Shown here one piece after another: positions 308 through 48,531 of a DNA stretch of 64,000 nucleotides (position 1 is its first letter; each line of letters begins with the position of its first letter). A program made the position numbers and the translations under genes. The notes below the pieces were generated by a model. That model made no database searches. It was not told the DNA's origin and saw only the letters and a program-made list of their open reading frames with translations. The stretch spans positions 186,001-250,000 of IMG/VR virus record IMGVR_UViG_3300040801_001224. One strand, written 5' to 3'.

Positions 308-325
308 AAAAGTAGGTGGGGGTGC

Positions 326-354
326 TTGACATCCCCACTTTTTTGTGTTATAAT
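326..354 (+). promoter_or_regulatory. sigma70 promoter embedded in the Hsp20 terminator hairpin
   Basis: TTGACA(326-331)-17 nt-TATAAT(349-354); overlaps GTGGGG...CCCCAC-T6 hairpin. Confidence 0.85.
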
Positions 355-395
355 TCGGGTTATGTAACAGTACTGTATTGTATGAAGGATATTGA

Positions 396-704
396 ATGAG
401 TGCCACTGACGTAATCGAAAAAACTGAAGCAAAAGAAGAAGTTGAAGTAAAAGAGCCTGGAAAATATAAGGTTGTTCTACACAATGATGACAAGACAACA
501 TTCGACTTTGTTATCTTTATATTAACTGAAGTATTTAATAAGTCAATGAAAGAAGCGGCTGAAATAACCATGTTTGTCCACGAAAAAGGCCAAGCAGTCG
601 CAGGTATTTACACGTATCAGATTGCAGAGATGAAAATTGACGAGTCGATTACCCTGGCAAGACGTGCCGGATTCCCACTCACACTGACCGCTGAAGAGCT
701 CTAA
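396..704 (+). CDS. clpS: ATP-dependent Clp protease adaptor ClpS
   Basis: YKVVLHNDDKTTFDFVIFILTEVF...ITMFVHEKGQAVAGIY...FPLTLTAE. Confidence 0.95.
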   Translation: MSATDVIEKTEAKEEVEVKEPGKYKVVLHNDDKTTFDFVIFILTEVFNKSMKEAAEITMFVHEKGQAVAGIYTYQIAEMKIDESITLARRAGFPLTLTAEEL

Positions 705-756
705 AACGATCACCGACCGGTAAATAATATTAGCACTACCTAAAAGGAGTGGTAAT

Positions 757-825
757 ATGCGAATACAACACACTTCCCTCATCACCCAAATTCTGGTAAC
801 CCAGAGTAACACCAATCAAAAATAA
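757..825 (+). CDS. Putative 22-aa small protein
   Basis: TAAATA box at 721-726, SD AAGGAG, ATG 757, TAA 823-825 (MRIQHTSLITQILVTQSNTNQK). Confidence 0.35.
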   Translation: MRIQHTSLITQILVTQSNTNQK

Positions 826-836
826 AAAGGACAGTT

Positions 837-1148
837 ATGAATATAATAGATTTAATGGAATTAGGAACTGAATTGGATGTATACAAATCAGGCAAGAGAC
901 TTGGCACAATATTAGTAATTCAGTATGAAGACTTAATTCATGAAACAATTGGTGAGTATGATGATCGATTTGAATCATATGCAGAGTATATGATGGAGCT
1001 ACATGCCCGCATCAAAGATCACGTATCATGCCCGTATAATATCACATGGTATACCCTACCGAATACCGAAACTCTTGATATTAATGACGTAGCAACACAA
1101 ACAGTACGTGAAGGCAATAATATAGTGGTCGTGGAATATCTTGACTAA
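837..1148 (+). CDS. Hypothetical protein
   Basis: 103-aa ORF with SD AAGGA. Confidence 0.75.
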   Translation: MNIIDLMELGTELDVYKSGKRLGTILVIQYEDLIHETIGEYDDRFESYAEYMMELHARIKDHVSCPYNITWYTLPNTETLDINDVATQTVREGNNIVVVEYLD

Positions 1149-1169
1149 ACCACTTTTTTAACGTATAAT
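1141..1169 (+). promoter_or_regulatory. sigma70 promoter (CCACT class)
   Basis: TTGACT-aaaCCACT...-TATAAT, 17-nt spacer. Confidence 0.8.
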
Positions 1170-1198
1170 TGTAAGCAGACAAACTAATAGGAGTATTT

Positions 1199-1465
1199 AT
1201 GAAACTTACGCAGCCTTGTCTGCTTATGACAATTGCTGACCAAGAAGTCGATTGGGCGATGCTTGTTGCCCCTGGGGAGGAATGGACTGAAGAGACCGTA
1301 TCCAATTATTGTGACACACTTAATACTGACGGTATATATGGATACCCAGTTATGATGGATGACCCGCGCCTCAAAAATGGCATTGTAAATCGAATTATTG
1401 AATCTTTAAACTCAGCACTCGTTGAGTACAAACCACTTGAAATTCCAGGAGTATTTAAACTATGA
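1199..1465 (+). CDS. Hypothetical protein
   Basis: 88-aa ORF with SD AGGAG downstream of promoter. Confidence 0.8.
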   Translation: MKLTQPCLLMTIADQEVDWAMLVAPGEEWTEETVSNYCDTLNTDGIYGYPVMMDDPRLKNGIVNRIIESLNSALVEYKPLEIPGVFKL

Positions 1466-1572
1466 TGACATTTGAACCAAGCATGACTTTTGGTGAAGCT
1501 GTATTAAATTTAGAAATTACTACGGTTGAATATACCTCTACCGGTGTAAATATCCGCTTAAGTTTTTCATAA
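1462..1572 (+). CDS. Putative 36-aa small protein
   Basis: ATGA overlap with previous stop; ends just before terminator. Confidence 0.4.
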   Translation: MMTFEPSMTFGEAVLNLEITTVEYTSTGVNIRLSFS

Positions 1573-1576
1573 AGAT

Positions 1577-1601
1577 GGGGCGGGCTTTGCCCGCTTCTTT
1601 T
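1577..1601 (+). terminator. Intrinsic terminator
   Basis: GGGGCGGGC-TTT-GCCCGCTTC followed by TTTT. Confidence 0.75.
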
Positions 1602-1660
1602 CCACTACCCAAATGCCCAACAATAGATAAATACTAATATTATTTAGTAGGAGATTTATT

Positions 1661-3103: not shown

Positions 3104-3106
3104 TTC

Positions 3107-3135
3107 TTGACATCTTTACATCACTATAGTATAAT
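3107..3135 (+). promoter_or_regulatory. sigma70 promoter; predicted +1 coincides with ATG 3142 (leaderless)
   Basis: TTGACA(3107)-17-TATAAT(3130-3135). Confidence 0.8.
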
Positions 3136-3141
3136 ATTGGT

Positions 3142-5129: not shown

Positions 5130-5130
5130 C

Positions 5131-5159
5131 TTGACACCCTCCCTTTAATCTGTTATAAT
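5131..5159 (+). promoter_or_regulatory. sigma70 promoter
   Basis: TTGACA-17-TATAAT. Confidence 0.8.
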
Positions 5160-5183
5160 ACTCCAATAACATGGAGATTTAAT

Positions 5184-6433: not shown

Positions 6434-6680
6434 CTATTCTGACGGTGGTGGTACGAGATGGGGTGATCTGGGTATAGCGAAAAATGGTTACATATTTGGC
6501 AAGCCAACCCTCCACAAAAAGTTCGTGTGGCTACCCAGGAAAACTGTTGAAAAGACGTGGACTTGGGGTAGTTGTTACGCATACCACGAGCATTATCGAA
6601 ATGGTAGCGATCTATACTATGTATCAAATGAAGATGCTCTTGCTGGCGTTTTAACTGAAAAATATAGGATGAAAGAATAG
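6426..6680 (+). CDS. Small Trp-rich paralog 2
   Basis: KKFVWLPRKTVEKTWTWG; GTG start overlapping previous gene. Confidence 0.65.
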   Translation: MGSYSDGGGTRWGDLGIAKNGYIFGKPTLHKKFVWLPRKTVEKTWTWGSCYAYHEHYRNGSDLYYVSNEDALAGVLTEKYRMKE

Positions 6681-6934
6681 TGGGCACCGGCTTTAAGAAT
6701 ATATTTGATGTGTATGTCCCCTATAAGTCTAAGATATTCACTAAATTTTTATGGTTCCCTGAAAGAGTCGGAGGCAAGTGGCACTGGGGTAAGACATATT
6801 ATTATCTTGAAAACTTCTATCAAGGCCATGCGAAAATTTATATGTCTAAAGAAGAAGCGTTTATGGAAGTTATGAAGGGCAATCTTACGTTCGCATCGGA
6901 CGAATGTGTTCACCCGGACGATCGTACTGCTTGA
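6680..6934 (+). CDS. Small Trp-rich paralog 3
   Basis: TKFLWFPERVGGKWHWG. Confidence 0.65.
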   Translation: MGTGFKNIFDVYVPYKSKIFTKFLWFPERVGGKWHWGKTYYYLENFYQGHAKIYMSKEEAFMEVMKGNLTFASDECVHPDDRTA

Positions 6935-7202
6935 ATTTTACGCCTGAACGTTGTTTAGCATTCTCGCCCCCACGATACCCTGGAGTTTGAAATTCATCAT
7001 CTGGATTGTCATGTGGATCATTTGACCAGTGATCTTCTTCAGCAGGTTCTTTTGTGATTACCGGTGTTTCACCTTTAGATTTAGCCGCGATCTGTTGGTA
7101 ACGCTCTTCTTCATCATGTCGAGCGTCAGAATTTTCTGGATTGAATTGATCATCAATTTCATTCCAAACTTGATCAATATCGTAAATTTCTTTTATTTTC
7201 AT
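6885..7202 (-). CDS. Late hypothetical protein (MKIKEI N-terminus)
   Basis: 105 aa; GATAAATA on minus strand at 7234-7241. Confidence 0.75.
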   Translation of the reverse strand: MKIKEIYDIDQVWNEIDDQFNPENSDARHDEEERYQQIAAKSKGETPVITKEPAEEDHWSNDPHDNPDDEFQTPGYRGGENAKQRSGVKFKQYDRPGEHIRPMRT

Positions 7203-7203
7203 G

Positions 7204-7232
7204 TTGACAAAACCACTAAATTGTTATATAAT
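7204..7232 (+). promoter_or_regulatory. sigma70 promoter (CCACT class) for clpP
   Basis: TTGACA-aaaCCACT-...TATAAT, 17-nt spacer. Confidence 0.85.
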
Positions 7233-7267
7233 GTATTTATCACAATTATACTTAAAGGAGAAGTGAA

Positions 7268-7885
7268 ATGGGATTAGTTCCAATGGTAGTAGAGAAAACA
7301 TCACAGGGTGAGCGTTCTTTCGATATTTTTAGTAGGTTATTGAAAGAGAGGACGGTTTTCTTTACAGGTGAGGTACGTGATGAGATGGCCAATCTAATTG
7401 TAGCACAGTTACTTTATTTAGAAGCCGAAGCACCCGAAGCAGACATTACTCTTTATATTAACAGCCCAGGCGGATCGGTGAGTGCAGGCCTCGCTGTATA
7501 TGACACGATGCAATTTATTAAGCCAGACGTTTCTACAATCGTAGCAGGCCAAGCATGTTCGATGGGTTCTTTCATTGCTCAAGCAGGCGCACCTGGCAAG
7601 CGCATGGTATTGCCACAGTCAAGAACAATGGTTCACCGTGTTAGCTCAGGCACACCGGCTACTCGAGGCTCAGTCCACGTGATGGAACATGAATTTGAAG
7701 ACGCCAGGCGCTCATTTGAAGAGTCAAAGCGTGTTAATGAGATCCTTACTCAATTGTACGCCAAGCACAACACAAAAGGTCAGACTTACGAACAGTTGCT
7801 TGAAACCCTTAAATTTGACACCTACCTTTCGGCACAAGAAGCAGTCGACTTTGGGTTAGCTGATCAGATTATCACAAATCGATAA
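7268..7885 (+). CDS. clpP: ATP-dependent Clp protease proteolytic subunit
   Basis: [31 protein letters not shown], catalytic S (GQACSMG), H (MVHR), D (FDTYL). Confidence 0.97.
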
Positions 7886-7913
7886 ATACTTGTAACATAC
7901 TATTATCACTTAT

Positions 7914-7941
7914 GACGGCGGAGCTTTTTCCGCCGTCTTTC
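7914..7941 (+). terminator. Intrinsic terminator after clpP
   Basis: GACGGCGGA-gctttt-TCCGCCGTC-TTTC. Confidence 0.8.
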
Positions 7942-8005
7942 TGATAAATACAAATAAGTATATGCTCACAACACAAACTAAATCGCATATATTAAAGGGA
8001 ATGTC

Positions 8006-8344
8006 ATGGAAGAAATAACATGGCCTGTGGCTATAAGTGCCTTGGGTACACTCGTCGTAATTGCTACGTTTATGTTCAAATGGTTCAGTAAGGATCAGAA
8101 ACCTTGGACAAGTGATTTACAGAAAACCGAAGATGAACTTAACAGTGGAATTCGGAATTTGGAACACCGAACTACCGTATCAGAAGGCAAACAACAAGAA
8201 TTGATACGTCGAGTTAACGAACTTAAAGATGAGGTAAAAGCCCAGGGTGAAACCTCAGAAAAGAAGATTGAGAAAATCGAAGAAAAAGTCGAGAAGATCA
8301 CTCAACTTATGATTGACATCTTACAAAACACCAACACTAGATAA
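8006..8344 (+). CDS. Late membrane-anchored coiled-coil protein
   Basis: N-terminal hydrophobic helix then coiled coil; TAAATA boxes at 7883 and 7945. Confidence 0.7.
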   Translation: MEEITWPVAISALGTLVVIATFMFKWFSKDQKPWTSDLQKTEDELNSGIRNLEHRTTVSEGKQQELIRRVNELKDEVKAQGETSEKKIEKIEEKVEKITQLMIDILQNTNTR

Positions 8345-8612
8345 ACGTTAGTGTTGCCGCTAAATAGTCCTCATTGTAGCGGAAGTAAATTTTTACTGAA
8401 TCATTACTGATATTTTGGCGAGTCCAATCAGTCCTACTTATATTGTTGTCCTTAATAAATTTCCAGAAAGAACGTAAACTTGTCCCAGGTATAGTGATTA
8501 CTCGATCCTGCCACTCCCTGCGCCATTGCTTGTAGACTTCGGCTCGGTGACCGATGTCATAGTCACCATCAAAATATTTTTGTATCTCTTCATCAGTATA
8601 TAACTTACTCAT
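8337..8612 (-). CDS. Hypothetical protein (start reassigned to MSKLYTDEE)
   Basis: ATG at 8612 lies exactly at predicted +1 of the minus-strand sigma70 promoter. Confidence 0.7.
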   Translation of the reverse strand: MSKLYTDEEIQKYFDGDYDIGHRAEVYKQWRREWQDRVITIPGTSLRSFWKFIKDNNISRTDWTRQNISNDSVKIYFRYNEDYLAATLTFI

Positions 8613-8618
8613 AGGACT

Positions 8619-8679
8619 ATTATACAATAAAAATAAAATCTTGTCAAGACTTGACAAAACCACTTATCTGTAGTATAAT
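8619..8679. promoter_or_regulatory. Back-to-back divergent sigma70 promoters sharing a palindrome TTGTCAAG-A-CTTGACAA
   Basis: Minus: -35 8642-8647, -10 8619-8624; plus: -35 8651-8656 (CCACT class), -10 8674-8679; both 17-nt spacers. Confidence 0.85.
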
Positions 8680-8705
8680 AGCCGTATAATAAAAATGGAG
8701 AGCTT

Positions 8706-9200
8706 ATGAGCAATTTTACTCAAGTATGTGATTTAAATAAGGCATTTGGCAGACCTAAGACAAACAGCCAAGAACAAGATTATACGAAGCTAGAGAATCA
8801 ATTTTCTTTAGTTTTAGAAGAAGTTGAAGAGTTACAACAGGCGATTAAAGATGAGAACTGGACGGAAGTTAAAGATGCGATTGGTGACATACTCGTTGTT
8901 ACATACGGGATGGGCTATGTTGCTGATATCAATTGCGATAGACTTATGGCCAATATAAGTGAGAGTAATTTCTCAAAGTTCTGTACGCCATTAGAGAAGA
9001 CACAGACCGTTGATTATTATGAGGGTCTTGGTGCAGAAGTAGTCGCAGAAGAAACAATGATTAATGGTATGCTAAGGTATGCTATAAAATCAGCTAAAGA
9101 TCAAACATACACCGAAAAGGGTGTGGAAAAAGCAGTAAAGAAAGGCAAGTTACTGAAGAACGTAAACTGGGAAGAACCTGAACTAGACGTGGAAAACTAA
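8706..9200 (+). CDS. MazG-like / phosphoribosyl-ATP pyrophosphohydrolase-like NTP pyrophosphatase
   Basis: LVLEEVEEL...EVKDAIGDILVVTYG...ISESNFSK. Confidence 0.85.
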   Translation: MSNFTQVCDLNKAFGRPKTNSQEQDYTKLENQFSLVLEEVEELQQAIKDENWTEVKDAIGDILVVTYGMGYVADINCDRLMANISESNFSKFCTPLEKTQTVDYYEGLGAEVVAEETMINGMLRYAIKSAKDQTYTEKGVEKAVKKGKLLKNVNWEEPELDVEN

Positions 9201-9201
9201 T

Positions 9202-10026
9202 ATGTGGCAAGGTGATGCAATATACGAGCTTTTCGAACATTATAATCATTATGATGACAGATACGAGAAGAAGAGTAGTGTGATGAGTAGATACAATAAC
9301 CGATATAACGAAAAGGATCTTTTTTATAAGATGCTTCTTGTACAGCCTCATCGACTGTTCCAGCTACATCCAGAGCTTTTTGGCACGTCACTGTTAAACC
9401 AAGAAGATATAGGTGGCTTGTATCAGAATAACCGGACACTATTTAAGGTGTTGGGATTTGAATATAAGGACCTGCCGTCATATGTCATGCTTGATGATAT
9501 GCTATATGATAGTGTGCCAATTGCTAGTTTGCGAAAGCATAGTGCGGCTATTCTAGAAAAAGTAACCACTAAAGAAGACATATCAAGTATAGCGTATCAA
9601 CGACCAGCATTATTTTTCCATCTTGGATTTAGTCTTGAAAAGGTGAACTCTGGCGAATCCATTGCTAAACTATTAAACTATTGTGATAGGTCTAAAAAGT
9701 TTAATGACCGGTATGATGATGTGTTCAGACAAGCAATGAAGTTAAACAAGACTGAGCTCAGAGAATTTATTCAGAAGTCACCAGCAACACTACGCAAATT
9801 GGATGCTGATTTGTTAGATGAGTCAACTCTAACTCACAAAGAATGGTTGCTACACATACTGAAACCAAAAAGTTTTAACAGGTTTTACAAGAATCATGTA
9901 ACACCAGAGTTAGTGGAAGATTTAAAAGAAGGTGTCTTCGTAGACGCCATATCAGGTAGTTCAATGGTAAACGTAAACAAATACCTGAAACATTACGAAG
10001 GAACGAAAAATTTATGGCCAGCATGA
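9202..10026 (+). CDS. Hypothetical protein
   Basis: 274-aa ORF in operon. Confidence 0.8.
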   Translation: MWQGDAIYELFEHYNHYDDRYEKKSSVMSRYNNRYNEKDLFYKMLLVQPHRLFQLHPELFGTSLLNQEDIGGLYQNNRTLFKVLGFEYKDLPSYVMLDDMLYDSVPIASLRKHSAAILEKVTTKEDISSIAYQRPALFFHLGFSLEKVNSGESIAKLLNYCDRSKKFNDRYDDVFRQAMKLNKTELREFIQKSPATLRKLDADLLDESTLTHKEWLLHILKPKSFNRFYKNHVTPELVEDLKEGVFVDAISGSSMVNVNKYLKHYEGTKNLWPA

Positions 10027-10439: not shown

Positions 10440-10653
10440 TATTCTTATAGAGAATCTAGGCAAACCACAGGAAACCTGGCGCTACCGGAAGATCGATTCA
10501 AATGGCAACCTCAACGTTGGCAAACGTTGTCGTATCGTAAAACACTTGGACAAAGGTAAGAATATTAATCTTGTGATCCAGGTATTTGAAAACGAAAACA
10601 ACATCTCTGATGAAGACATGTTGTTCTTTAGCTTATCGTCATGTGGAAACTAA
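10372..10653 (+). CDS. Hypothetical protein
   Basis: 93-aa ORF with SD GAGG. Confidence 0.6.
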   Translation: MKPVKKTLSVAISTKQQLSQLSNILIENLGKPQETWRYRKIDSNGNLNVGKRCRIVKHLDKGKNINLVIQVFENENNISDEDMLFFSLSSCGN

Positions 10654-11012
10654 AGCAAGGTAAGCAGATGCGTGATTACTCTGGTAAGATGAAATTCTAC
10701 CGGGTGACCATTACTGATGAAGACCTCGGGTCAAACACCCAGTCTAACACATTCCGAAATCATTTCATGACACAACGTAGAAAACAGCAGGCGTTCAAAA
10801 ACAAGTATAGGAAATGGGCTTGGGATAACTGTGGTGACACCTGGGCTATTTCGGAAATCGACACCATCTACAATCACGGTGACATTCAACATTTCTTTTA
10901 TATTGGTTTCACAAGTGGTGAAGATAAACTGATATTTAAGCTTTCACATGATCCTGAAGAAGTAATCATATACAAGGGTGGCATATCACTCTTTGTGCGT
11001 GAAAGAGCTTGA
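10641..11012 (+). CDS. Hypothetical protein
   Basis: 123-aa ORF in operon. Confidence 0.7.
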   Translation: MWKLKQGKQMRDYSGKMKFYRVTITDEDLGSNTQSNTFRNHFMTQRRKQQAFKNKYRKWAWDNCGDTWAISEIDTIYNHGDIQHFFYIGFTSGEDKLIFKLSHDPEEVIIYKGGISLFVRERA

Positions 11013-11037
11013 CACTACCACTTTATAATGTTAAAAT
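11009..11037 (+). promoter_or_regulatory. sigma70 promoter (CCACT class)
   Basis: TTGACA-ctaCCACT...-TAAAAT, 17-nt spacer. Confidence 0.7.
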
Positions 11038-11053
11038 ATACGTAATATAAATA

Positions 11054-11575
11054 ATGTTGGAAAAACTGATGATAAAAATTAAGAGCAAGATTGGCAATTT
11101 TATTGTTAATCGTGCGCTATCAATAACTGCTAAAAAGTTTGAAGATCACTATAATACGTGTGACCCCTTACGAACAGCAGAAGACATGGCTAATCATATC
11201 TATTTAGAGCAACAGGATTCTAACGTAGAAACATTTTATGCTTATTACATTGACATGGAAGGCTTTATTATTGACAGCTTCACTAAGTCAGGATCCAAGA
11301 ATTCAATTCAGATTTCCAATAAAGAGATTTTACAGCGAGCATTGGCGTGTGACGCACACAAGATTATAGTGGCACACACTCATGTCGCCCAATCACATGA
11401 ACCCAGTGATTCAGATATTTTGTTCACATACAATTTAATTAAAGCGGCCGGCCTATTAGACATGGTTGTGTATGATCATATTGTAGTGAGTAGACAAGGC
11501 TGGACGTCAATGAACGAACAGGGTTATATTGAGAATATGTACACTGAATTATTGTCAGAAAAGGAAGAAGCGTGA
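11054..11575 (+). CDS. RadC-like JAB/MPN domain protein
   Basis: Complete JAMM motif E...HTH-x7-SDSD; DHIVV. Confidence 0.85.
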   Translation: MLEKLMIKIKSKIGNFIVNRALSITAKKFEDHYNTCDPLRTAEDMANHIYLEQQDSNVETFYAYYIDMEGFIIDSFTKSGSKNSIQISNKEILQRALACDAHKIIVAHTHVAQSHEPSDSDILFTYNLIKAAGLLDMVVYDHIVVSRQGWTSMNEQGYIENMYTELLSEKEEA

Positions 11576-11928
11576 TAACAACTGACAGAGCCCAGGAGTT
11601 AATGTATTTGATTAGGACTAAGACTCCTATTCGACTAACTGACGAAGTCGGTGAAGAACGGCTGTCAGTAAAAATTCCTTTTACAGATAAAGTAGTAGAT
11701 ACTTCCGACATGTATTCTCTACGTGATTTATTTGAAGCCGGCGTTATTAACTTTGGTGAAGTGTCAATTGGAACTGCCGGCACGTATACTCTTGAAGTCA
11801 TATTTTATGATGACCTAATAGTAATGAATGATTATGGCGACCATTTAGAAGTGTTCAGAGATGAAACGATAAATGTTGCTATTGATGAAAACGTTTTTAT
11901 GGATATTCAACAATATTTGAGGTATTAA
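11572..11928 (+). CDS. Hypothetical protein
   Basis: 118-aa ORF, GTGA overlap, SD AAGGAAG. Confidence 0.7.
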   Translation: MITTDRAQELMYLIRTKTPIRLTDEVGEERLSVKIPFTDKVVDTSDMYSLRDLFEAGVINFGEVSIGTAGTYTLEVIFYDDLIVMNDYGDHLEVFRDETINVAIDENVFMDIQQYLRY

Positions 11929-11929
11929 A

Positions 11930-12466
11930 ATGTCAACAGTTACGATTGAACGATATAAGCCAGGCTTCTTTGAAGGCATCTTCTTGAAATTAGCATATAA
12001 GTTTCCAAAGTTTGGAACGGAGAAAGTTAACGTTTTTATGTTTATTAGCGTTATGTTTAAGTTAACCAGGCAGTTTTTCCACCGCACTTGGAATAAAATA
12101 AAAGCTATTCGTTTTGACAAACTGAGTTTGAAATTCTATTTCCATCATATGATGTTGAACCTAATGTTCTTCCTTAAAGGCTTAATCGGCTTGATTTCAT
12201 TAGGCTTATTTAGTCCTAACCTAACCGGCAAAGCAACTACTCGCTTGGCTAGAGCAAGACGTGACGTATCAGACGCTAGAGCTGAACGAGTACTTGAAGA
12301 AGTTGGTGAAGAAGAATTAGACGAACAGTTTGAGCATGGCGAGAAATCAAAGGTCAGTAAGATCCAGAAAAATCGTATTCGCAGGAGTAAGATGTCTGAT
12401 GAAGAGCTTAATGATGAAATTGATCAGAAGCTTGCGGCATTCCTGGACGAAAACGACGATAAGTAA
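11930..12466 (+). CDS. Hypothetical membrane protein
   Basis: Hydrophobic segments followed by charged tail; SD GAGG. Confidence 0.75.
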   Translation: MSTVTIERYKPGFFEGIFLKLAYKFPKFGTEKVNVFMFISVMFKLTRQFFHRTWNKIKAIRFDKLSLKFYFHHMMLNLMFFLKGLIGLISLGLFSPNLTGKATTRLARARRDVSDARAERVLEEVGEEELDEQFEHGEKSKVSKIQKNRIRRSKMSDEELNDEIDQKLAAFLDENDDK

Positions 12467-12470
12467 AAGT

Positions 12471-12728
12471 ATGGACCAGGAAGAATTAATAATGCTGATG
12501 CGATTGGGTCAGCACGTAAATTTAGATGACTACGATATTGACTTAACTGAGTACACTGATCTTATGTTAAAGAATGTGAACTTAAGTAAAGTGTATTATG
12601 ATGAGAGCGGGAGAGCTTCCTATGTGATTAATGAGGACATATCATATAGGTATAGGAACATTGACTTCCAGATGGGGTCAATAGCATATTCAGAGGGATT
12701 TAAGAATGACACATCATCCGTTTTATGA
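12471..12728 (+). CDS. Hypothetical protein (start reassigned to MDQEEL)
   Basis: In-frame ATG 4 nt after previous stop. Confidence 0.65.
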   Translation: MDQEELIMLMRLGQHVNLDDYDIDLTEYTDLMLKNVNLSKVYYDESGRASYVINEDISYRYRNIDFQMGSIAYSEGFKNDTSSVL

Positions 12729-12987
12729 TCCAAAGGATTTAAACGACATGCAACTTGCTGAAAAACTGGGTGAGTTGGTTGAAAAGCGTGGCCACGCATT
12801 TAGGATGGGCATGCCATCGCTTGTAGATAATATTGAAATGCTTATAGCTGAGATACACATGGAACAGGAAGCACGTACTTTTAAGGCTGAAAAAGAGTAT
12901 TATGAGAGGCAGGGCATTGATCCTAATGAGCCAATTACACTGGGTGAAGTAGAAGAAGTGGATATGAGGAAAGACGATAATGTTTAA
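12706..12987 (+). CDS. Hypothetical protein
   Basis: 93-aa ORF in operon. Confidence 0.75.
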   Translation: MTHHPFYDPKDLNDMQLAEKLGELVEKRGHAFRMGMPSLVDNIEMLIAEIHMEQEARTFKAEKEYYERQGIDPNEPITLGEVEEVDMRKDDNV

Positions 12988-13663
12988 TGAAATATCATTA
13001 TTGAAGATGAGTACAGGATTTTACGGTAATAGAATTAATGACACAACTATTTCACCGACATATTGGGAATTAACATATGAGATAATTCCTACTGAAGTAA
13101 GCGTTGAGGGCAAGATTAATCGTGGTGAGATTGCCTATGAGAAATTAAAGTTTTGGATTGATTACATCCTAAATGATTTGACGGTGAGCGAACACTCCAA
13201 TGAATTAGCCATGCAGATGTCATATATGTTTGAAAATCCAACTATGCTAACACCCTATTCGCCAACTAACAATCACTTAATACAGTTATTACATTCCAAG
13301 TTTTCAGCAATTGTTGGTGATGACCTGTATATTGGAAAGATGACACTGTCAAGCTCAGAAACTGACAGCGTGTGTGTGTTTAATACTGACGAAGGCGCAT
13401 ATAGCCTCCCGGAAGGCGATGAATACATTGTTGGCATGTACCACGATAAGCCATGGTGGCAACGCAAAACAATGGACTTTGCAGATTTTACTAAAGAAGA
13501 AATTGATAGCGATGAAGCGTTGCGTGAATTCATTGAGAATGAAGATCCACTAGTTACCTTTGAACGTGATATTATTGAGAGCGTGGCAGAAGCAACTAAC
13601 CGAAAACCACAGACAGCAGAAATCATTAAAGTACCTAAGAAATGGAAGCCAAAGATAGTTTAG
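12980..13663 (+). CDS. Conserved jumbo-phage hypothetical protein
   Basis: 227-aa ORF ending KWKPKIV immediately before the DnaE-like fragment. Confidence 0.75.
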   Translation: MFNEISLLKMSTGFYGNRINDTTISPTYWELTYEIIPTEVSVEGKINRGEIAYEKLKFWIDYILNDLTVSEHSNELAMQMSYMFENPTMLTPYSPTNNHLIQLLHSKFSAIVGDDLYIGKMTLSSSETDSVCVFNTDEGAYSLPEGDEYIVGMYHDKPWWQRKTMDFADFTKEEIDSDEALREFIENEDPLVTFERDIIESVAEATNRKPQTAEIIKVPKKWKPKIV

Positions 13664-14154
13664 GACGCATAACATTATCCGAGCAGGATTGTATAGACTT
13701 ATTGTTAAACGGCATTCAATTGCAGAATGTTTACGTTGACGATAAATCTGTGTCTGAAAAATATAACAGAAAAAACGACGAATACTTTCGCTATGACAGC
13801 GTTTTATCTGTGAAGGAGGACGTTTCTTTTGAAGAATTCCACCAGAATAATGTGGATACGTGGTTTATGCCAGATAAGTACAAGAACATAGATGTCAGAG
13901 AATACGTCTTAGATCGTGTCAGCACAGATGAAGAACGTGAGCGTGTTGAAATGGAATACGCCATGTACAAAGAACGAGATTTAGATGACGTATTGCGCCT
14001 TATGATTTTCCTTATAGAATTCTTTAGGGAAAACGACATTGTTTGGGGCGTAGGTCGTGGTTCAAGTGTAGCTTCATATATTTTATATATTATAGGCGTA
14101 CACAAGGTAAATTCAATCCTATACGATCTCGATATCAATGAATTTTTAAAGTAA
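13642..14154 (+). CDS. Stand-alone DNA polymerase III alpha (DnaE)-like fragment
   Basis: GVGRGSSVASYILYIIGVHKVN..YDL..EFL matches the DnaE GRGSxxxSLxxY motif; only 170 aa. Confidence 0.8.
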   Translation: MEAKDSLGRITLSEQDCIDLLLNGIQLQNVYVDDKSVSEKYNRKNDEYFRYDSVLSVKEDVSFEEFHQNNVDTWFMPDKYKNIDVREYVLDRVSTDEERERVEMEYAMYKERDLDDVLRLMIFLIEFFRENDIVWGVGRGSSVASYILYIIGVHKVNSILYDLDINEFLK

Positions 14155-14166
14155 ACGGAGATTACA

Positions 14167-14565
14167 ATGGCTAAAATGTATAGAACATCAAAAGGCAAAA
14201 TGATAGACATGGATGCTCTACGATTGCAGAGTGAAAAATCTACAGCAGTAGGCAACATGGGCGTCAATGGCCGTGGTGACAAATTAGGTAAAGGTGGTAA
14301 GGTAGAAGCCACGGTAGAACAACAGGCGAGAGCATACTACCGACATAACCCAAATGCCGCACCAAAGAAAGTAAATCTAAAAGAAGATTTAGTTGAAGAA
14401 GAAGTCAAGCAGGCTGAAGAAGAGCTTGAGGAAATTACTGAAAACATGCCAGAGAAAAAGTCTAAGCCTAAGAAAAAGAAGACTATTTCAAAGAAAAAAG
14501 AAGTTGAACTGGAAGATGGCTCAATACAAATTGTTGACGAGGACGTTGAGGTTGACGAAGATTAG
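14167..14565 (+). CDS. Hypothetical protein
   Basis: 132-aa ORF, SD GGAG; MYRTSKGKMIDM...VGNMGVNGRGDKLG. Confidence 0.8.
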   Translation: MAKMYRTSKGKMIDMDALRLQSEKSTAVGNMGVNGRGDKLGKGGKVEATVEQQARAYYRHNPNAAPKKVNLKEDLVEEEVKQAEEELEEITENMPEKKSKPKKKKTISKKKEVELEDGSIQIVDEDVEVDED

Positions 14566-14734
14566 GCAAGTAGCACACACTGGTTATCATAACGGTATAC
14601 CAACTACCGTGTTTGTCAACAACTCCGACGATGAGCGCAGGTATGCCTTCGAAAAAGCAGAAAAAATGAATAAGCATAACCCAATGACATTGCCGGGTGA
14701 TGAATGGTTAATTAAAGAAGGATGGTTAAAGTGA
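14552..14734 (+). CDS. Putative small protein (TTG start)
   Basis: 3' part of the 14393-14734 ORF; GAGG upstream of TTG; fills the gap before GroES. Confidence 0.4.
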   Translation: MTKIRQVAHTGYHNGIPTTVFVNNSDDERRYAFEKAEKMNKHNPMTLPGDEWLIKEGWLK

Positions 14735-15075
14735 ATCTAAAACCAATTAAAGACACAATATTGATACACAACTTAGAACGTGGTGGACGTACCTTAAGCT
14801 CAGGTATCATGCTACTAAATGATGATGGTAAAGAACATGGCGTAAGAGCTCGTTGGGCGCAAGTATACGCTAAAGGCCCAGAGATTGATTTTGTCACTGT
14901 AGGCGAATGGGTGTTGATTGAGCATGGTCGCTGGTCACGTGGTTTAGAAGTAGAAGAAGGTTTGACTGTATATAAGGTAGATAATGAGTCTATCCTGGCT
15001 ACAGCAGACGAAGAACCAAGCAATGAATATGTGAGACAAAGTACGTCCCACGGTTTCACAAAGGTTAGAGTTTAA
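14722..15075 (+). CDS. groES: GroES/Cpn10-like co-chaperonin
   Basis: LKPIKDTILI..ERGGRTLSSGIML..GPE..VTVGEWVL..YKVDNESILA. Confidence 0.85.
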   Translation: MVKVNLKPIKDTILIHNLERGGRTLSSGIMLLNDDGKEHGVRARWAQVYAKGPEIDFVTVGEWVLIEHGRWSRGLEVEEGLTVYKVDNESILATADEEPSNEYVRQSTSHGFTKVRV

Positions 15076-15111
15076 CAAGATAAATATATAGTAATATAGG
15101 AGATACATACA

Positions 15112-15588
15112 ATGTCAGAAGGGTTGATTTTAATAGGGGTTATAGCTGTAATAGTTGTTTTGATGACTGTGAAGCGTGGCAAGAAAGAGGACGATCACGG
15201 CGGCAACGAGGATGGTAGAGCACCATTGCGTAGTCCAGTTCAAGAAGCACCACGAGACGATGCTATTCGTGGTGAGGATGGAAACATCACTCCAGAGATG
15301 GAAGAAGCTCGCCGTAGAGTAGAAGAACAAGAACGTCAAGCTGAAGAAGATTCAATTCCAGAATTAACTGATGTAGTTGAGCCAACACCAAGTGGCGACT
15401 TAGATTTCAGCGGTACAGGTTCTGTTATTGATGCTGACTTACATGAAGAGTTGCAGATTGACATTTCAGCTTGGAAAAAGCTAAAAAAAGCTGACTTAGT
15501 CACTGAAGCTGGAAAGCAAGGCATTGAACTGAGCATGTCAATGACAAAAAATGACATGATTGCGAAAGTTGAAGAAAGCATTAAGTAA
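15112..15588 (+). CDS. Membrane-anchored protein with C-terminal HeH/Rho-N-like helical domain
   Basis: N-terminal TM; C-terminal KLKKADL...QGIELSMSMTKNDMI; late box at 15081. Confidence 0.6.
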   Translation: MSEGLILIGVIAVIVVLMTVKRGKKEDDHGGNEDGRAPLRSPVQEAPRDDAIRGEDGNITPEMEEARRRVEEQERQAEEDSIPELTDVVEPTPSGDLDFSGTGSVIDADLHEELQIDISAWKKLKKADLVTEAGKQGIELSMSMTKNDMIAKVEESIK

Positions 15589-15594
15589 GTACTG

Positions 15595-15879
15595 ATGCTA
15601 AAAAACAAAGTTGACCATCTACTTGCTACATTGGGCGAGGAGTGTGGTGAAGTACAGCAGAGCGTAGGCAAGGCCCTACGCTTCGGCTTATTTGAGCATA
15701 ACCCAAAGACACAAATGACACACTGGGTTAGTTTAAGGAATGAAGTACACGATCTAATAGCAGTTTACGAAATGTTATGTGACGACCTTGAATTGAGTTC
15801 AGAGTTCGATCGTGAAAAAATAGAAAATAAAATACACAAAGTAAACAAATACTACACTGAATTACAAGACAAGGAGTGA
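15595..15879 (+). CDS. MazG-like NTP pyrophosphatase domain protein
   Basis: LGEECGEVQQSVGKALRFG...NEVHDL. Confidence 0.7.
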   Translation: MLKNKVDHLLATLGEECGEVQQSVGKALRFGLFEHNPKTQMTHWVSLRNEVHDLIAVYEMLCDDLELSSEFDREKIENKIHKVNKYYTELQDKE

Positions 15880-15885
15880 CACACA

Positions 15886-16101
15886 ATGATACCACAGGGT
15901 ATCCGCAATTTGACTAAAGCACTGAAGCGAAAGTCAAAACCTTCCGAAGACCACTCCGAAGAATTCAAACACCTAATGCGTATGAAAAAGGATGACCTAT
16001 TCGTCCTGGCCGCTGAACATGACTGTGAAATACCGCCAGGTGCTACCAAAGCAAAATTAACAAATCTTATTTTAGACAAGAAAACACTTGACAATCACTA
16101 G
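15886..16101 (+). CDS. Small HeH/Rho-N-like protein
   Basis: MKKDDLFVLAAEHDCEIPPGATKAKL; SD AAGGAG. Confidence 0.55.
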   Translation: MIPQGIRNLTKALKRKSKPSEDHSEEFKHLMRMKKDDLFVLAAEHDCEIPPGATKAKLTNLILDKKTLDNH

Positions 16102-16116
16102 TATTTCTAGTATAAT
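16088..16116 (+). promoter_or_regulatory. sigma70 promoter
   Basis: TTGACA-17-TATAAT. Confidence 0.8.
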
Positions 16117-16142
16117 ACACACATCAACATAGGAATATATGA

Positions 16143-17072
16143 ATGAACAAGGTATGGTTCGATAAGTACAGGCCAGTTACTACTGAAGGTTATGTATTTA
16201 AAAATGATAATTTAAAATCACAAATTGCTACTTGGGTCAAAGAGCAAAACATTCCACACTTATTATTTTCAGGGCCAGCTGGCACAGGAAAGACAACACT
16301 AGCAAAAGTTATATTTAATGAGCTTGATGCTGATAAGGCAGACATTCTAGAAATTAACGCTTCTAGTGATAACGGTGTTGACTACATACGTGACACAACC
16401 ACAAACTTTGTAAGCACAATGTCATTCAGTGGTGGTATGCGTTACGTATTACTTGATGAGGCCGACTACTTGAGTCCAAATGCTCAAGCGGCATTGCGTG
16501 GTGTTATGGAACGGTTTATCAACACTTCACGTTTTATTCTAACGTGTAACTATCCAAGTAAAATTATTCCAGCTCTACATTCACGAGTACAGAGCATTAG
16601 TATTGATACCCTGGAGAAACCAGAGTTTGCTGGTAAGATGGCTGAAATTTTAATGTCTGAGGATGTTAAATTTGATGCTGATTCCCTGCAGACGTATATA
16701 GACGCTTACTACCCAGATATGCGTAAATGTATTAATGAGATGCAGTCAAACAGCTCATCTGGTGAACTGGTTATGCCAGACACAAGTACATCATCTAAAG
16801 ACTACATGCTAGAAATGGTTGCCTTATTCCGCAATAAGCAGTTTGAGCAAGCACGTAAGTTAGTCTGTAAGCAAGCGGCACCCGAAGAATATGAACAAAT
16901 ATTCCGTTTTTTATATGAGAACGTTGAGTTCTGGGGTGAGCAAGATCCAGTGAAAACCGGACAAGCAATTGTAACAATTAGAAATGGATTGGTAAATCAC
17001 ACATTAGTAGCAGACCCAGAGATCAATTTGGCCGCTTGTCTGTGTGACTTGGAATTAGTACAACAAGGATAA
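16143..17072 (+). CDS. Sliding-clamp loader AAA+ subunit (RFC small subunit / T4 gp44-like)
   Basis: WFDKYRP, SGPAGTGKTT, LEINASS, LLDEADYL, AQAALR, LHSRV. Confidence 0.95.
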   Translation: MNKVWFDKYRPVTTEGYVFKNDNLKSQIATWVKEQNIPHLLFSGPAGTGKTTLAKVIFNELDADKADILEINASSDNGVDYIRDTTTNFVSTMSFSGGMRYVLLDEADYLSPNAQAALRGVMERFINTSRFILTCNYPSKIIPALHSRVQSISIDTLEKPEFAGKMAEILMSEDVKFDADSLQTYIDAYYPDMRKCINEMQSNSSSGELVMPDTSTSSKDYMLEMVALFRNKQFEQARKLVCKQAAPEEYEQIFRFLYENVEFWGEQDPVKTGQAIVTIRNGLVNHTLVADPEINLAACLCDLELVQQG

Positions 17073-17076
17073 AATA

Positions 17077-17415
17077 ATGAAGAAAGGATACTACATAGTT
17101 TTAACACACTCATACCACGCGATGCCAACTAACCCGGGCAAGCACACTGTAAACGAAAAATGCGAATTTGTGACTTATGTTAAGGATCGTCATTTAGTTA
17201 ACGCAACTGTTATCATGGATATGGTTGAGCAGAAGTTAGTTAAGAGTCGTGTTGAAAATGCTACGTTTGATAAGTTTGTTAATCACGTAGAAAAAACACA
17301 TCCTGAATACCAGGAATTCAAGAAGCTCCTAAAAGAAGCACATCCTGATTTATACAAAGGCTTTGCTGATAAAGAAGTTTCTGTAACTGAAGATGGAGAA
17401 GTAAATGTTGAATAA
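17077..17415 (+). CDS. Hypothetical protein
   Basis: 112-aa ORF in operon. Confidence 0.75.
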   Translation: MKKGYYIVLTHSYHAMPTNPGKHTVNEKCEFVTYVKDRHLVNATVIMDMVEQKLVKSRVENATFDKFVNHVEKTHPEYQEFKKLLKEAHPDLYKGFADKEVSVTEDGEVNVE

Positions 17416-17677
17416 AGACTATTCCCAACTAAAAGAGTATCTGGATTTAGAAGGGACTGAGATATCAGATTACCTGTATACAGTGATTGAATTGTATGAG
17501 ATGTATGACATTGCTCACGGCATGTCGGAAGGATTCAAGGAATCAATTGAGCGAGAATTAGATTTCTGGCTCGAACGATTCGAGACTGAAACTGAAATTG
17601 TTGAAGAAGAGCATATCCGCCCGGCTATTCCTGAAAAGAAAACAGTTATCAGAACACTTGTCTGGAATGACGAGTAG
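17405..17677 (+). CDS. Hypothetical protein
   Basis: 90-aa ORF, SD GGAG. Confidence 0.7.
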   Translation: MLNKDYSQLKEYLDLEGTEISDYLYTVIELYEMYDIAHGMSEGFKESIERELDFWLERFETETEIVEEEHIRPAIPEKKTVIRTLVWNDE

Positions 17678-17706
17678 TTGACAAGGCCACTTTCTTGTGC
17701 TACAAT
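17678..17706 (+). promoter_or_regulatory. sigma70 promoter (CCACT class)
   Basis: TTGACA-aggCCACT...-TACAAT, 17-nt spacer. Confidence 0.8.
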
Positions 17707-17740
17707 GGTTCAATTGTTTATAAGGAAGGAACGATTATTT

Positions 17741-18847
17741 ATGTGTAAAGTATCTTTAAATTCAACTAGAAAATGTCGCAAGCATAAGGTGACCGGTGAA
17801 GTAATTGATCTGCCGGCTTGCGTTGTTTGTGGCAAAAAAGGCTCACCAATGACAGGCTGGGTTGAGTTAGATGATTCAGATTACCTTTACGCAAGATGGC
17901 GCCCAGTGAGCCAGAAAATTTCTGAAATGACTGGACACTCTACTGATGATTCTTGTTGCGAGAGTTGTAAGAGAAAGCTGAATAGGGAATGGCGTAGAGC
18001 TAATCCTGATGCCTATATCAATAGCATTGATGCAGAGCGTCACATTAAATTAAACGATTACGTTGGTGTTGAATTGACTATTGCTGAGTTTAACCACGTC
18101 ATGGCTCTGTCCAAAACGGGTGAGAAGGCTGCGGATCAATTCAAAGCAATGGTTGAATTGGGTATTGACTACAAAACGTTCAACAGTGTTGCAGAGTATA
18201 CATACTACACTCGTTATAATAACTACAACCCTGGCACAACTATTGAAGAGTTTCGTGAAATCCGCAAAGAAGGCATTAACTACGCTGAATTTGTGGAAAA
18301 AGAAAATAGCAAAATTATCGCATATATGCAACATGGTGATGAAACCAAATATATCGACTTCATCACAAAGAAGCCATTCCACGTAACTGATTACACCGAA
18401 GCAGGTAACGATCAGTTTAAGGAACTCCTTGGCTTCGATACTCTTGAAGAAAAGCCTGATCATCATCATTTTGTGATTTGTAAAAACATTTCTGTAACCA
18501 AAAACAACACAATGAATCCATCGGGTATTATGAAAACTGACATACTTGGTAATTCAGATTATTTTATTGAAATGATGGGTACTATTGCAATTGGCAAAAC
18601 CACCCACAAGCTCATGCATGGTGACAAACTTGGTGGCGATTTTGACATCAACGACATGATGGAATTGGGCATTGCTCCGTGGTGGGCACAGTGTAAAGAT
18701 AATTACGAAGCATTGCGATCTAAATACCCAGGTGTTATTGACCACATTGATTATGAAGAAATGATTGCTAGGCACACCCTATCTAACTACTTGGATGGCA
18801 CATACATGATGTCAGATAAAGCACAAGTAAGATTCCAATACATTTGA
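17741..18847 (+). CDS. Cys-rich protein with possible C-terminal HNH-like nuclease domain
   Basis: Start moved to ATG 17741 (SD AAGGA; the TTG start lies in the promoter); CxxC pairs; DHHHF...N...THKLMH. Confidence 0.45.
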   Translation: MCKVSLNSTRKCRKHKVTGEVIDLPACVVCGKKGSPMTGWVELDDSDYLYARWRPVSQKISEMTGHSTDDSCCESCKRKLNREWRRANPDAYINSIDAERHIKLNDYVGVELTIAEFNHVMALSKTGEKAADQFKAMVELGIDYKTFNSVAEYTYYTRYNNYNPGTTIEEFREIRKEGINYAEFVEKENSKIIAYMQHGDETKYIDFITKKPFHVTDYTEAGNDQFKELLGFDTLEEKPDHHHFVICKNISVTKNNTMNPSGIMKTDILGNSDYFIEMMGTIAIGKTTHKLMHGDKLGGDFDINDMMELGIAPWWAQCKDNYEALRSKYPGVIDHIDYEEMIARHTLSNYLDGTYMMSDKAQVRFQYI

Positions 18848-18872
18848 CATATCCACTTTCTTGTGCTATAAT
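18844..18872 (+). promoter_or_regulatory. sigma70 promoter (CCACT class)
   Basis: TTGACA-tatCCACT...-TATAAT, 17-nt spacer. Confidence 0.8.
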
Positions 18873-18902
18873 AGTGGCGATTCGAAATAAAGGAGAATCG
18901 TT

Positions 18903-19502
18903 TTGGAAAAAATTATATTAGTTGACGTTGATGGTGTATTGCTCGACTGGAACGCAGGTTTCTGTAATTGGATGGATAAGCAAGGCTTTCCGTTCATCCC
19001 AGGTACTGAACATGAATACGCTATTGAAAAGCGTCACGAGAATGTTACATTCACACAGGCACGTAAATTGATAGAAGAATTTAACACTTCTGACGAACTG
19101 CGTACCCTACAACCCAATAAAGACTCACAAGAATTTGTTGCCAAACTTGTTGATGAAGGTTTCCGGTTTATTGCTGTTACTGCGGTATCCGATGATCCGG
19201 TTGCTGGCATTAACAGACGTTATAACTTGGAGCAGGTGTTTGGCGATATATTTGATGAGATCCACTGTACTCCATTAGGTGAATCCAAGCAGGTCATCCT
19301 ACGTGAAAACTGGGGTGGTACAGGTTTGATATGGATCGAGGATCACTTCAAAAATGCTGAAGCGGGTTACGAAGAAGGCCTACGTTCTGTACTGGTGGAC
19401 ACACCATATAACAGGCACTTCATGACCGATCTGTTCCCCAGAGTGGACGCTGAAAAACCCTGGGCAGATATCTATAAAATTGTACATGATCTGTACAGAT
19501 AA
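18903..19502 (+). CDS. HAD-superfamily hydrolase, 5'(3')-deoxyribonucleotidase-like
   Basis: LVDVDGVLLDW, IWIEDH. Confidence 0.85.
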   Translation: MEKIILVDVDGVLLDWNAGFCNWMDKQGFPFIPGTEHEYAIEKRHENVTFTQARKLIEEFNTSDELRTLQPNKDSQEFVAKLVDEGFRFIAVTAVSDDPVAGINRRYNLEQVFGDIFDEIHCTPLGESKQVILRENWGGTGLIWIEDHFKNAEAGYEEGLRSVLVDTPYNRHFMTDLFPRVDAEKPWADIYKIVHDLYR

Positions 19503-19510
19503 ATAAACAC

Positions 19511-19582
19511 GTTGCTAGGGTGTGAACACTGGCTACCAGGTCTAATATCCTGTTCCGCCCTTGGAATCGCCCTAGCACACCA
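19511..19582 (+). ncRNA. Candidate 72-nt structured RNA ending in ACCA (tRNA-like, non-canonical)
   Basis: Starts 5 nt after TAAATA(19500-19505); closing stem TGCTAGGGTG/CGCCCTAGCA; internal hairpins; 3' CCA at 19580-19582; no canonical T or D loops. Confidence 0.35.
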
Positions 19583-19599
19583 AAAAATAAATCCCCTTT

Positions 19600-19621
19600 T
19601 AGTGTGAACTAGTTCACACTA
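19600..19621. promoter_or_regulatory. Perfect 22-bp palindrome matching the CRP box (TGTGA-N6-TCACA)
   Basis: TAGTGTGAACTAGTTCACACTA, centred about 60 bp upstream of the predicted +1. Confidence 0.65.
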
Positions 19622-19634
19622 TTACCTCAGAACG

Positions 19635-19663
19635 TTGACAATACCACTTTTTTCCAGTATAAT
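19635..19663 (+). promoter_or_regulatory. sigma70 promoter (CCACT class)
   Basis: TTGACA-ataCCACT...-TATAAT, 17-nt spacer. Confidence 0.85.
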
Positions 19664-19717
19664 GTATATAAATAGAGATATACATTTAAACTTAATTAAT
19701 CCGTAGGAGGATGAGTC

Positions 19718-48528: not shown

Positions 48529-48531
48529 TAC

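Follow-up and report, generated by a model that had tools for sequence, protein, structure and literature searches.

A conserved spacer block in sigma70-type promoters of an uncultured jumbo phage resembles one arm of a T4-type promoter stem-loop cassette

Results

A conserved block in the promoter spacer

The stretch of DNA analyzed here (the window, 64,000 nucleotides) covers positions 186001-250000 of one contig of 328,096 bp (IMG/VR record IMGVR_UViG_3300040801_001224; 40% G+C) that is classed as complete in IMG/VR and has direct terminal repeats. It derives from an uncultured jumbo phage in a microbial-mat metagenome. The DNA polymerase and a ClpA-like protein of this phage are closest to those of the Pseudomonas jumbo phage PA5oct group (49-53% identity), and a megablast search returned no near-identical phage record. 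Our subject is a short block, CCACT followed by a run of T, located in the 17-nt spacer of many of the sigma70-type promoters of this genome. Nine promoters in the window carry it:

326-354, plus strand: upstream of clpS (396-704; PF02617, E=1.3e-27), with CCACT at 335-339 and then the T-run
1141-1169, plus strand: -35 hexamer TTGACT, upstream of an open reading frame (ORF) of 88 residues (1199-1465)
7204-7232, plus strand: upstream of clpP (7268-7885; CLP_protease, E=9.7e-63)
8651-8679, plus strand: upstream of a MazG-like gene (8706-9200)
11009-11037, plus strand: -10 hexamer TAAAAT, upstream of a RadC-like JAB gene (11054-11575; RadC, E=5.5e-23)
17678-17706, plus strand: -10 hexamer TACAAT, upstream of a 377-residue ORF of unknown function (17714-18847)
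18844-18872, plus strand: upstream of an NT5C/HAD-type nucleotidase gene (18903-19502)
19635-19663, plus strand: upstream of a gene for an FG-GAP repeat protein (19718-21670)
27080-27108, plus strand: upstream of a ClpA-like ATPase gene (27150-30485)

A preliminary description of this stretch had named the first eight of these, all of which we recovered at the positions it gave; it had missed the ninth. A pattern search for TTGAC(A/T)-N3-CCACT-N9-TATAAT matched the sites at 326, 1141, 7204, 8651, 18844 and 19635 without mismatch, as it did the additional site at 27080, while those at 11009 and 17678 each depart from it by one letter of the -10 hexamer. When up to two mismatches were allowed, the window yielded 13 matches, versus 0.05 expected from shuffles. 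To describe the whole genome, we defined a near-consensus promoter as TTGACA-N17-TATAAT with a 17-nt spacer and at most one hexamer mismatch. There are 94 such promoters on the plus strand versus 4 on the minus strand, and CCACT occupies spacer position 4 (-26 to -22) in 37 of the 94.

The conserved block exceeds the pentamer. It consists of A at -27, CCACT at -26 to -22 and a T-run at -21 to -17, and the neighboring spacer positions outside it vary freely. Other positions specific to the motif-positive promoters are G at -37, any base except C at -36 and A at +1. At this fixed register, mismatches to ACCACT are distributed bimodally among the 94 promoters, with 29, 13, 4, 13, 17, 9 and 9 of them showing zero to six mismatches, respectively; base composition predicts 0, 0.3, 2.8, 12, 28, 34 and 17. 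The shuffle counts and this bimodal spectrum together rule out a chance origin of the motif. A reading of CCACT as a DNA-methylation or restriction site was rejected because its genome-wide counts (255 on the plus strand and 295 on the minus strand) are near the expectation from composition.

The preliminary description had further listed six consensus promoters without CCACT (3107, 5131, 48532, 49246, 54113 and 58805). These indeed lack it, and the same is true of a promoter at 16088:

3107-3135, plus strand: perfect consensus, upstream of a 373-residue ORF of unknown function and then an N6/N4 DNA methylase gene
5131-5159, plus strand: upstream of a 59-residue ORF and then an RNase T-type exonuclease gene
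16088-16116, plus strand: upstream of a clamp loader gene (16143-17072)
48532-48560, plus strand: upstream of a 90-residue ORF with a weak, sub-threshold DsbA-like match
49246-49274, plus strand: -10 hexamer TATACT, upstream of a family-B DNA polymerase gene (49301-51670)
54113-54141, plus strand: CCAAT replacing CCACT, one letter off; assigned to the motif-negative class
58805-58833, plus strand: upstream of a 366-residue ORF and a nucleotide-sugar epimerase gene

Two promoter architectures

CCACT and the T-run behind it are the reverse complement of an element, an A-run plus AGTGG, that adjoins the -35 hexamer of promoters at the left end of the genome. This relationship separates two architectures. 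Type I comprises 18 promoters, found only at genome positions 6668-21568, that carry the A-run and AGTGG with the latter at -40 to -36. In 11 of the 18, CCACT is also present in the spacer, at -28, -26, -23 or -21, and the inverted repeats so formed have arms of up to 9 bp with the -35 hexamer in the loop. Folding of the region from -47 to -13 gave a free energy (dG) of -9.3 kcal/mol for the 18 type I promoters versus -3.8 kcal/mol for shuffles. A terminator scan called several of these hairpins terminator-like on both strands, because the A-run precedes the hairpin and the T-run follows it.

The upstream arm also invites comparison with a different promoter component, the proximal UP element, which occupies approximately -45 to -37 and adjoins the -35 hexamer (PMC2613000). 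The A-run plus AGTGG of the 18 promoters, at -45 to -36, agrees with this position, and the upstream arm looks like a proximal UP element. The consensus of that element is reportedly AAAAAARNR, as described by Estrem and colleagues in 1999.

The 33 type II promoters, the window sites among them, are scattered over 23-326 kb; in these, CCACT is fixed at -26 and the downstream arm stands alone. A search of the 150 nt upstream of these promoters for a hidden 5' partner (AGTGG) found one at 4 of 33, the background rate. Among the motif-positive sites of the window, a partner arm occurs only at 326 and 1141. At the first of these it forms the following element:

314-340, plus strand: hairpin whose loop contains the -35 hexamer of promoter 326; the CCCCACTT stretch makes up the 3' arm and the T-run comes after it, terminator-like

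The terminator scan assigned this hairpin 11 pairs, 6 of them GC, and its dG is -17.3. At promoter 1141 the partner, AGTGGT, occupies 1124-1129 and ends 11 nt upstream of the -35 hexamer. Promoters 7204 and 8651 are without a partner arm, and 17678 has an upstream arm with a single deviating letter (AGTAG). Thus at seven of the nine motif-positive sites in the window the downstream arm is alone and a hairpin is impossible.

Gene content of the promoter classes

The two classes precede different genes. In the window, motif-positive promoters precede the genes for ClpS, ClpP, the ClpA-like ATPase, the MazG-like protein, the RadC/JAB protein, the NT5C/HAD nucleotidase and the FG-GAP protein; in the rest of the genome they precede those for rIIA, an AAA ATPase, an HD phosphohydrolase, two nucleases and another ATPase, and dozens of small ORFs at the two ends of the genome lie behind such promoters as well. 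The regions at 2.5-30 kb and 255-326 kb of the genome are promoter-dense, with the promoters set before small ORFs. Motif-negative consensus promoters precede genes for SSB, helicase, primase, exonuclease, clamp loader, DNA polymerase, a gp55-like late sigma factor, and sugar and NAD metabolism. When the first gene of at least 150 residues behind each promoter was considered, replisome or late-sigma genes accounted for 0 of 14 motif-positive versus 7 of 17 motif-negative promoters (Fisher p = 0.009), a count that leaves out one ambiguous promoter at genome 178284 (CCAC at the register, before a metallophosphoesterase gene). The preliminary description had grouped clpS, clpP and the MazG-like, JAB, HAD and FG-GAP genes into a temporal regulon. 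The promoter subclass is real and has a distinct gene set, and the proposed regulon is supported at the level of gene content only.

A third promoter class, distinct from both of these, is represented by (T)GATAAATA(C), which resembles the T4 late promoter sequence TATAAATA. It has 99 copies in the genome, 66 of them just upstream of genes that lack a sigma70 promoter, structural genes on the minus strand included. The window contains 18 copies, versus 4.1 expected. These copies and the gp55-like gene are located as follows:

GATAAATA, plus strand: window 1626, 7881, 7943, 15079, 19498, 21728, 22462, 24346, 31087, 31552, 40681, 45789, 46348, 58139
GATAAATA, minus strand: window 7241, 31051, 44439, 58086
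gp55-like late sigma factor gene: genome 65476-66384

Several of the genes and promoters listed above have features of separate interest. Two perfect consensus promoters stand back to back at window 8619-8679, one on the plus strand at 8651 and one on the minus strand at 8647-8619, and their -35 hexamers make a palindrome (TTGTCAAG / CTTGACAA). The ClpA-like ATPase (1111 residues) contains an inserted LAGLIDADG/Hint (intein-like) segment at residues ~510-790, and tblastn alignments to relatives fall into two pieces that cover 66% of the protein. The gene for the family-B DNA polymerase falls into two plus-strand ORFs, an N-terminal one of 789 residues (49301-51670) and a C-terminal one of 370 residues (52658-53770), between which lies a 319-residue ORF of unknown function (phrog_22677; 51709-52668, plus strand). 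Assignment of the FG-GAP protein to TcdB_toxin_midN was treated as noise (E = 0.0087; 15.8 bits versus a cut-off of 24.8).

The motif in relatives and in other genomes

The exact pattern TTGACA-NN-ACCACT-N9-TATAAT occurs at 56 loci in IMG/VR. About 44 of these encode homologues of proteins of the window phage, and the pattern is therefore a signature of the clade. For closer comparison we used two contigs (G010 and G006) of a close relative whose DNA polymerase is 73% identical to that of the window phage, a complete 354,680-bp genome of a more distant relative (G001; 95 of 516 genes in common with the window phage) and fragments of further distant relatives (G005 and G002). The preliminary description had hinged its promoter class on conservation of position in relatives, and the same word does stand at the same register in the close relative, at 6 of 14 promoters in G010 and 4 of 10 in G006.

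Orthologous promoters mostly keep their class, with downstream genes that share 40-70% amino-acid identity. Those of rIIA and at genome 127155, 255691 and 292339 stay positive; those at genome 240113 (window 54113; orthologue in G010), 244805 (window 58805), 131563 and 147271 stay negative. In the more distant relatives other repeats occupy the same spacer: GGT-WWW-ACC inverted repeats in G001 and G005, sometimes running into ACCACT, and a small inverted repeat, CAAGAAATCTTG, in G002. These precede small early ORFs and rIIA, and the promoters of SSB, primase and exonuclease are plain. The upstream arm alone (As plus AGTGG adjoining TTGACA) was found at no fewer than 119 IMG/VR loci. Among 118 examined, 70-76 are related to the clade, and CCACT is present in the spacer at 4 of 107 unique sites.

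One motif-negative promoter presents a second case of spacer conservation. The SSB promoter (genome 147271-147299) is identical at 29 of 29 bases to those of two related contigs, at G006 62936 and L047 101, and the SSB proteins encoded behind these identical promoters are only ~66% identical.

PA5oct itself has 11 perfect promoters, none with the CCACT word, and the paper describing that phage reports only TTGAC and TATAATA boxes. Its RNA-sequencing data are therefore not transferable, and we dropped PA5oct as a transcriptional model. An origin of the motif in host promoters was also rejected: a search of 185,579 bacterial genomes for the exact pattern returned more than 120 single matches, mostly in Clostridia, with no genome enriched. 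Separately, an uncultured Gammaproteobacteria metagenome-assembled genome has two to three TTGACA-AA-ACC(A/T)C promoters (L092 392-420; L099 5264-5292 and 6854-6882) on contigs that look bacterial, with a tmRNA gene nearby. This could be a hint of the host or chance, and it led nowhere.

Candidate trans-acting factors

We searched the complete genome for proteins that might recognize the block. MotA (PF09158, MotCF), AsiA (PF09010) and Sigma70_r2 gave no match at E<=1, and GntR, HTH_3 (XRE-type), HU-type (Bac_DNA_binding) and ADPrib_exo_Tox families were not detected. The only recognizable helix-turn-helix (HTH) protein found is encoded by a 103-residue ORF (genome 132226-132537, minus strand) with a NUMOD3 motif and a C-terminal HTH_23 domain, located between a P-loop kinase-like gene and a 785-residue ORF (genome 132605-134962). 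By its domains it looks like a free-standing DNA-binding domain of a homing endonuclease. It is present in the close relative (G006 48353-48652, minus strand; 49% identity) and absent from G001, and being common to the window phage and that relative is its only link to the motif. With respect to the form of the putative target, the lone-arm sites have no dyad, whereas the left-end sites and the relatives do.

Two further candidates were set aside. The conserved early AAA ATPase (genome 8651-9739), considered as a DnaA/Orc-like binder, was identified by an atlas search as a classical viral AAA protein (PF00004-type); it has no sequence match in the PDB, and a single-sequence fold was uninformative (predicted local distance difference test score, pLDDT, of 39). 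The 185-residue product encoded behind the best palindromic promoter (genome 12281), considered as an autoregulator, matched only PHROGs of unknown function and has no homologue in G001.

Discussion

The promoters described here resemble the promoter-early stem-loops (PeSLs) of T4-type phages, known from RB49/phi1, KVP40/nt-1 and T4/PST. PeSLs are near-perfect sigma70 promoters fused to transcription-terminating stem-loops, which are set between the two hexamers or overlap one of them (-35 or -10), and their stem consensus differs by lineage (Gn..Cn; A3-4G3..C3T3-4; AGNA..TCNT). They concentrate in ORFan-rich hyperplastic regions, and core replication and virion genes are free of them; half copies in a degraded state and shuffling mediated by the cassettes have been documented, cassette recombination being marked by mini-circles and by indels between close relatives, and terminator activity has been assayed in RB49 (Arbiol et al. 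2010, PMC2839356; Comeau et al. 2014, PMC4122927). The elements of the window phage share with them a near-perfect TTGACA-N17-TATAAT core with an A/T-rich upstream region (here A-rich around -40), a predicted stem-loop over the -35 hexamer in type I and at window sites 326 and 1141, a position before ORFans and accessory genes and not before core replication genes, and the existence of half copies. The stem is again specific to the lineage: AAAGTGG/CCACTTT in the window phage and G010/G006, comparable to A3-4G3..C3T3-4 in nt-1; GGT-WWW-ACC in G001/G005; and the repeat noted above in G002. To judge from these sequences, type I fits the PeSL description feature by feature. Type II is a PeSL-like promoter with the arm sequence and the gene association but without the stem-loop. 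The carrier also differs, being a PA5oct-related jumbo phage and not a member of the Tquatrovirinae.

We propose that CCACT and its T-run (-27 to -17) represent the downstream arm of an inverted repeat that marks the early-promoter cassettes of this lineage, which would be a variant of T4-type PeSLs. In the 18 left-end promoters both arms would fold into a hairpin, with the -35 hexamer in the loop and the A-run and T-run as flanks. By analogy with the RB49 elements, we infer that this type I hairpin could serve a consensus promoter as an attached bidirectional terminator or insulator, such that type I elements act as promoter/terminator cassettes. In the 33 type II promoters, the lone arm appears to be under selection, which would keep it in the same register without the hairpin. 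It is found on accessory and host-takeover promoters and is missing from replisome and late-sigma ones, and it would therefore be a class mark of early and accessory promoters. We consider it probable overall that the block is the arm of a PeSL-variant cassette and that the lone arm serves as a selected mark of this sigma70-type promoter class.

Several observations weigh against this proposal. Among the 37 promoters with CCACT at -26, 31 are without the upstream arm (at least two mismatches to AGTGG at -40) and so carry the 3' arm alone, kept perfectly at its fixed position, a difference from PeSLs; moreover, the 33 type II promoters fold at the level of shuffles (dG -2.5 versus -2.2). The hairpin function that defines PeSLs is therefore inapplicable at most window sites. 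Six of the 18 left-end promoters (genome 7926, 8320, 11855, 17866, 18872 and 20358) carry (A/T)GTGG at -40 and -28 in direct orientation, 11-12 bp apart, and are explained by neither the hairpin reading nor a simple dimer. Part of the evidence from orthologues comes from loci that were found through the motif itself and is thus biased, and the concordance of class among orthologues could reflect evolutionary history, with cassettes spreading in plastic regions, and not regulation. Finally, the sequencing runs that carry this stretch are four metagenome DNA runs and no RNA run.

Neutral decay of the lone arm is nevertheless unlikely, because the arm is perfect in 29 promoters while its partner is gone, neighboring positions vary and the arm is kept at orthologous promoters whose proteins are 40-60% identical. 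A role at the level of DNA is therefore most likely, and two forms of it can be envisaged: a docking site for a protein beside sigma region 4, or tuning of the host polymerase by the spacer.

As a tentative suggestion, the lone arm could be a docking site for a putative protein beside sigma region 4. Inverted and direct copies of the word either side of the -35 hexamer at the left end, lineage-specific small palindromes at the same place in relatives and the absence of the word from equally strong replisome promoters favor a protein. Forward copies at -38 and reverse copies at -24 are approximately mirror images about the -35 hexamer, and sigma region 4 might be touched from either side. In an extended form of this suggestion, which is possible but somewhat doubtful, ACCACT and the T-run would be the site of a candidate phage protein, packaged or made early, that docks on one or the other flank of sigma region 4 (at -38 in forward and at -24 in inverted orientation) and times a large early regulon.

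Comparable doubt attaches to the view taken in the preliminary description, whereby the word binds a phage activator or repressor, or a modified holoenzyme, in the spacer and so defines a temporal class, for example through early shut-off while replisome promoters are on. That a lone, asymmetric word should be so strictly conserved, and in a fixed register, suits such a view, as do the differing gene sets of the two classes and the retention of class by orthologous genes in relatives that use palindromes instead. Moreover, early shut-off in T4 runs by an unidentified mechanism (PMC2988021). Against these points, none of the regulator families searched for was detected, the sole HTH lead is tied to the motif only by its presence in the close relative, and the variable spacing of the left-end arms, together with UUCG-type loops in related contigs, suits RNA hairpins better than a dimeric protein.

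The preliminary description had likened the logic of the motif to that of the MotA box. Both are short asymmetric words at a fixed distance from a sigma70 -10 hexamer, both split prereplicative promoters into two classes, and in both systems the replication genes fall into one class. As membership of that family, however, the comparison does not hold. The MotA box ((a/t)3TGCTTtA) replaces the -35 hexamer and is centered at -30, whereas in the window phage TTGAC(A/T) is intact at all sites and ACCACT lies at -27 to -22, centered near -24; the genome has no detectable gene for MotA, AsiA or a sigma70 region-2 protein; and the word belongs to the accessory genes instead of the replication genes. 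In T4, replication genes are transcribed from MotA-dependent middle promoters, whereas those of the window phage have plain consensus sigma70 promoters. The mechanism of the lone arm is not the MotA/AsiA system. Operators and loading sites within the spacers of strong phage promoters are known from lambda, in the form of OL1/OR1 (bound by CI and Cro) and the Q binding element in PR'. OL1 contains ACCACT in the PL spacer, a resemblance that is a lead and not a test. The lambda sites, however, either form dyads of 17 bp or come with a promoter-proximal pause, whereas the block of the window phage is a lone asymmetric one of 6-10 bp.

It is more doubtful that the lone arm acts by tuning the host RNA polymerase through the spacer. 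The fixed register, held to both hexamers in 37 promoters, and the UP-like upstream arm favor a role intrinsic to the polymerase, as do the class-specific T-run at -21 to -17, preference for G at -37/-36 and A at +1, and the occurrence of the A-run plus AGTGG alone throughout the clade at a position that fits the proximal UP element. Promoter strength is known to respond to the sequence of the spacer even though no base contacts are known (PMC2613000). T4 early (Pe) "uber" promoters, whose elements are UP, -35, TGn and -10 and which are read by the unmodified host sigma70 holoenzyme, likewise have extra conserved positions beyond the hexamers, with G just upstream of the -35 and an A-rich stretch at -40 to -45, and they too precede early or novel ORFs (Hinton 2010, PMC2988021; Nolan 2006, PMC1524935). 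The extra block of the window phage differs: it is one specific hexamer and lies in the spacer's upstream half. The stronger claim, in which the block alters DNA shape or polymerase contacts such that early promoters outcompete those of the host with no factor involved, is unlikely. Replisome promoters are equally consensus yet without the block, the left-end word also occurs at -28, -23 and -21 and inverted, relatives use palindromes that an asymmetric polymerase could not read, PA5oct promoters are without the word and bacterial genomes give only scattered single matches.

It is quite improbable that the lone arms are relics, half-decayed PeSL copies spread or homogenized by recombination whose association with accessory genes reflects cassette movement: half PeSLs and shuffling have precedents in the T4-type phages, and paralogous promoters of the close relative share flanks (TT before ACCACT, TGT before the -10) beyond what they share with their window-phage orthologues, which hints at concerted evolution of cassettes as a minor alternative, but a further 13 promoters have the arm only one letter off with the other arm wholly absent, and the shared identity, which is discontinuous and covers ~20 of 29 bp, is rather short to have arisen by gene conversion.

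A PeSL-variant origin of these elements would mean that promoter/terminator cassettes of this type, known from classical T4-like phages, also occur in the jumbo clade related to PA5oct. The lone surviving arm bears on whether such cassettes are mere recombination linkers and insulators or also regulatory sites. The genome offers a natural experiment, in which ~40 and ~35 equally consensus sigma70 promoters differ by one spacer block and serve different gene sets, and relatives with different spacer repeats retain the logic of the classes. The motif set is also a ready signature for locating and annotating the early regions of this uncultured clade. If the docking protein is real, it would represent control of a promoter class through a spacer box in an uncultured jumbo phage clade, distinct from MotA/AsiA. 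The finding also bears on how immediate-early transcription is kept apart from that of the replication phase in large virulent phages that have neither an RNA polymerase of their own nor MotA/AsiA.

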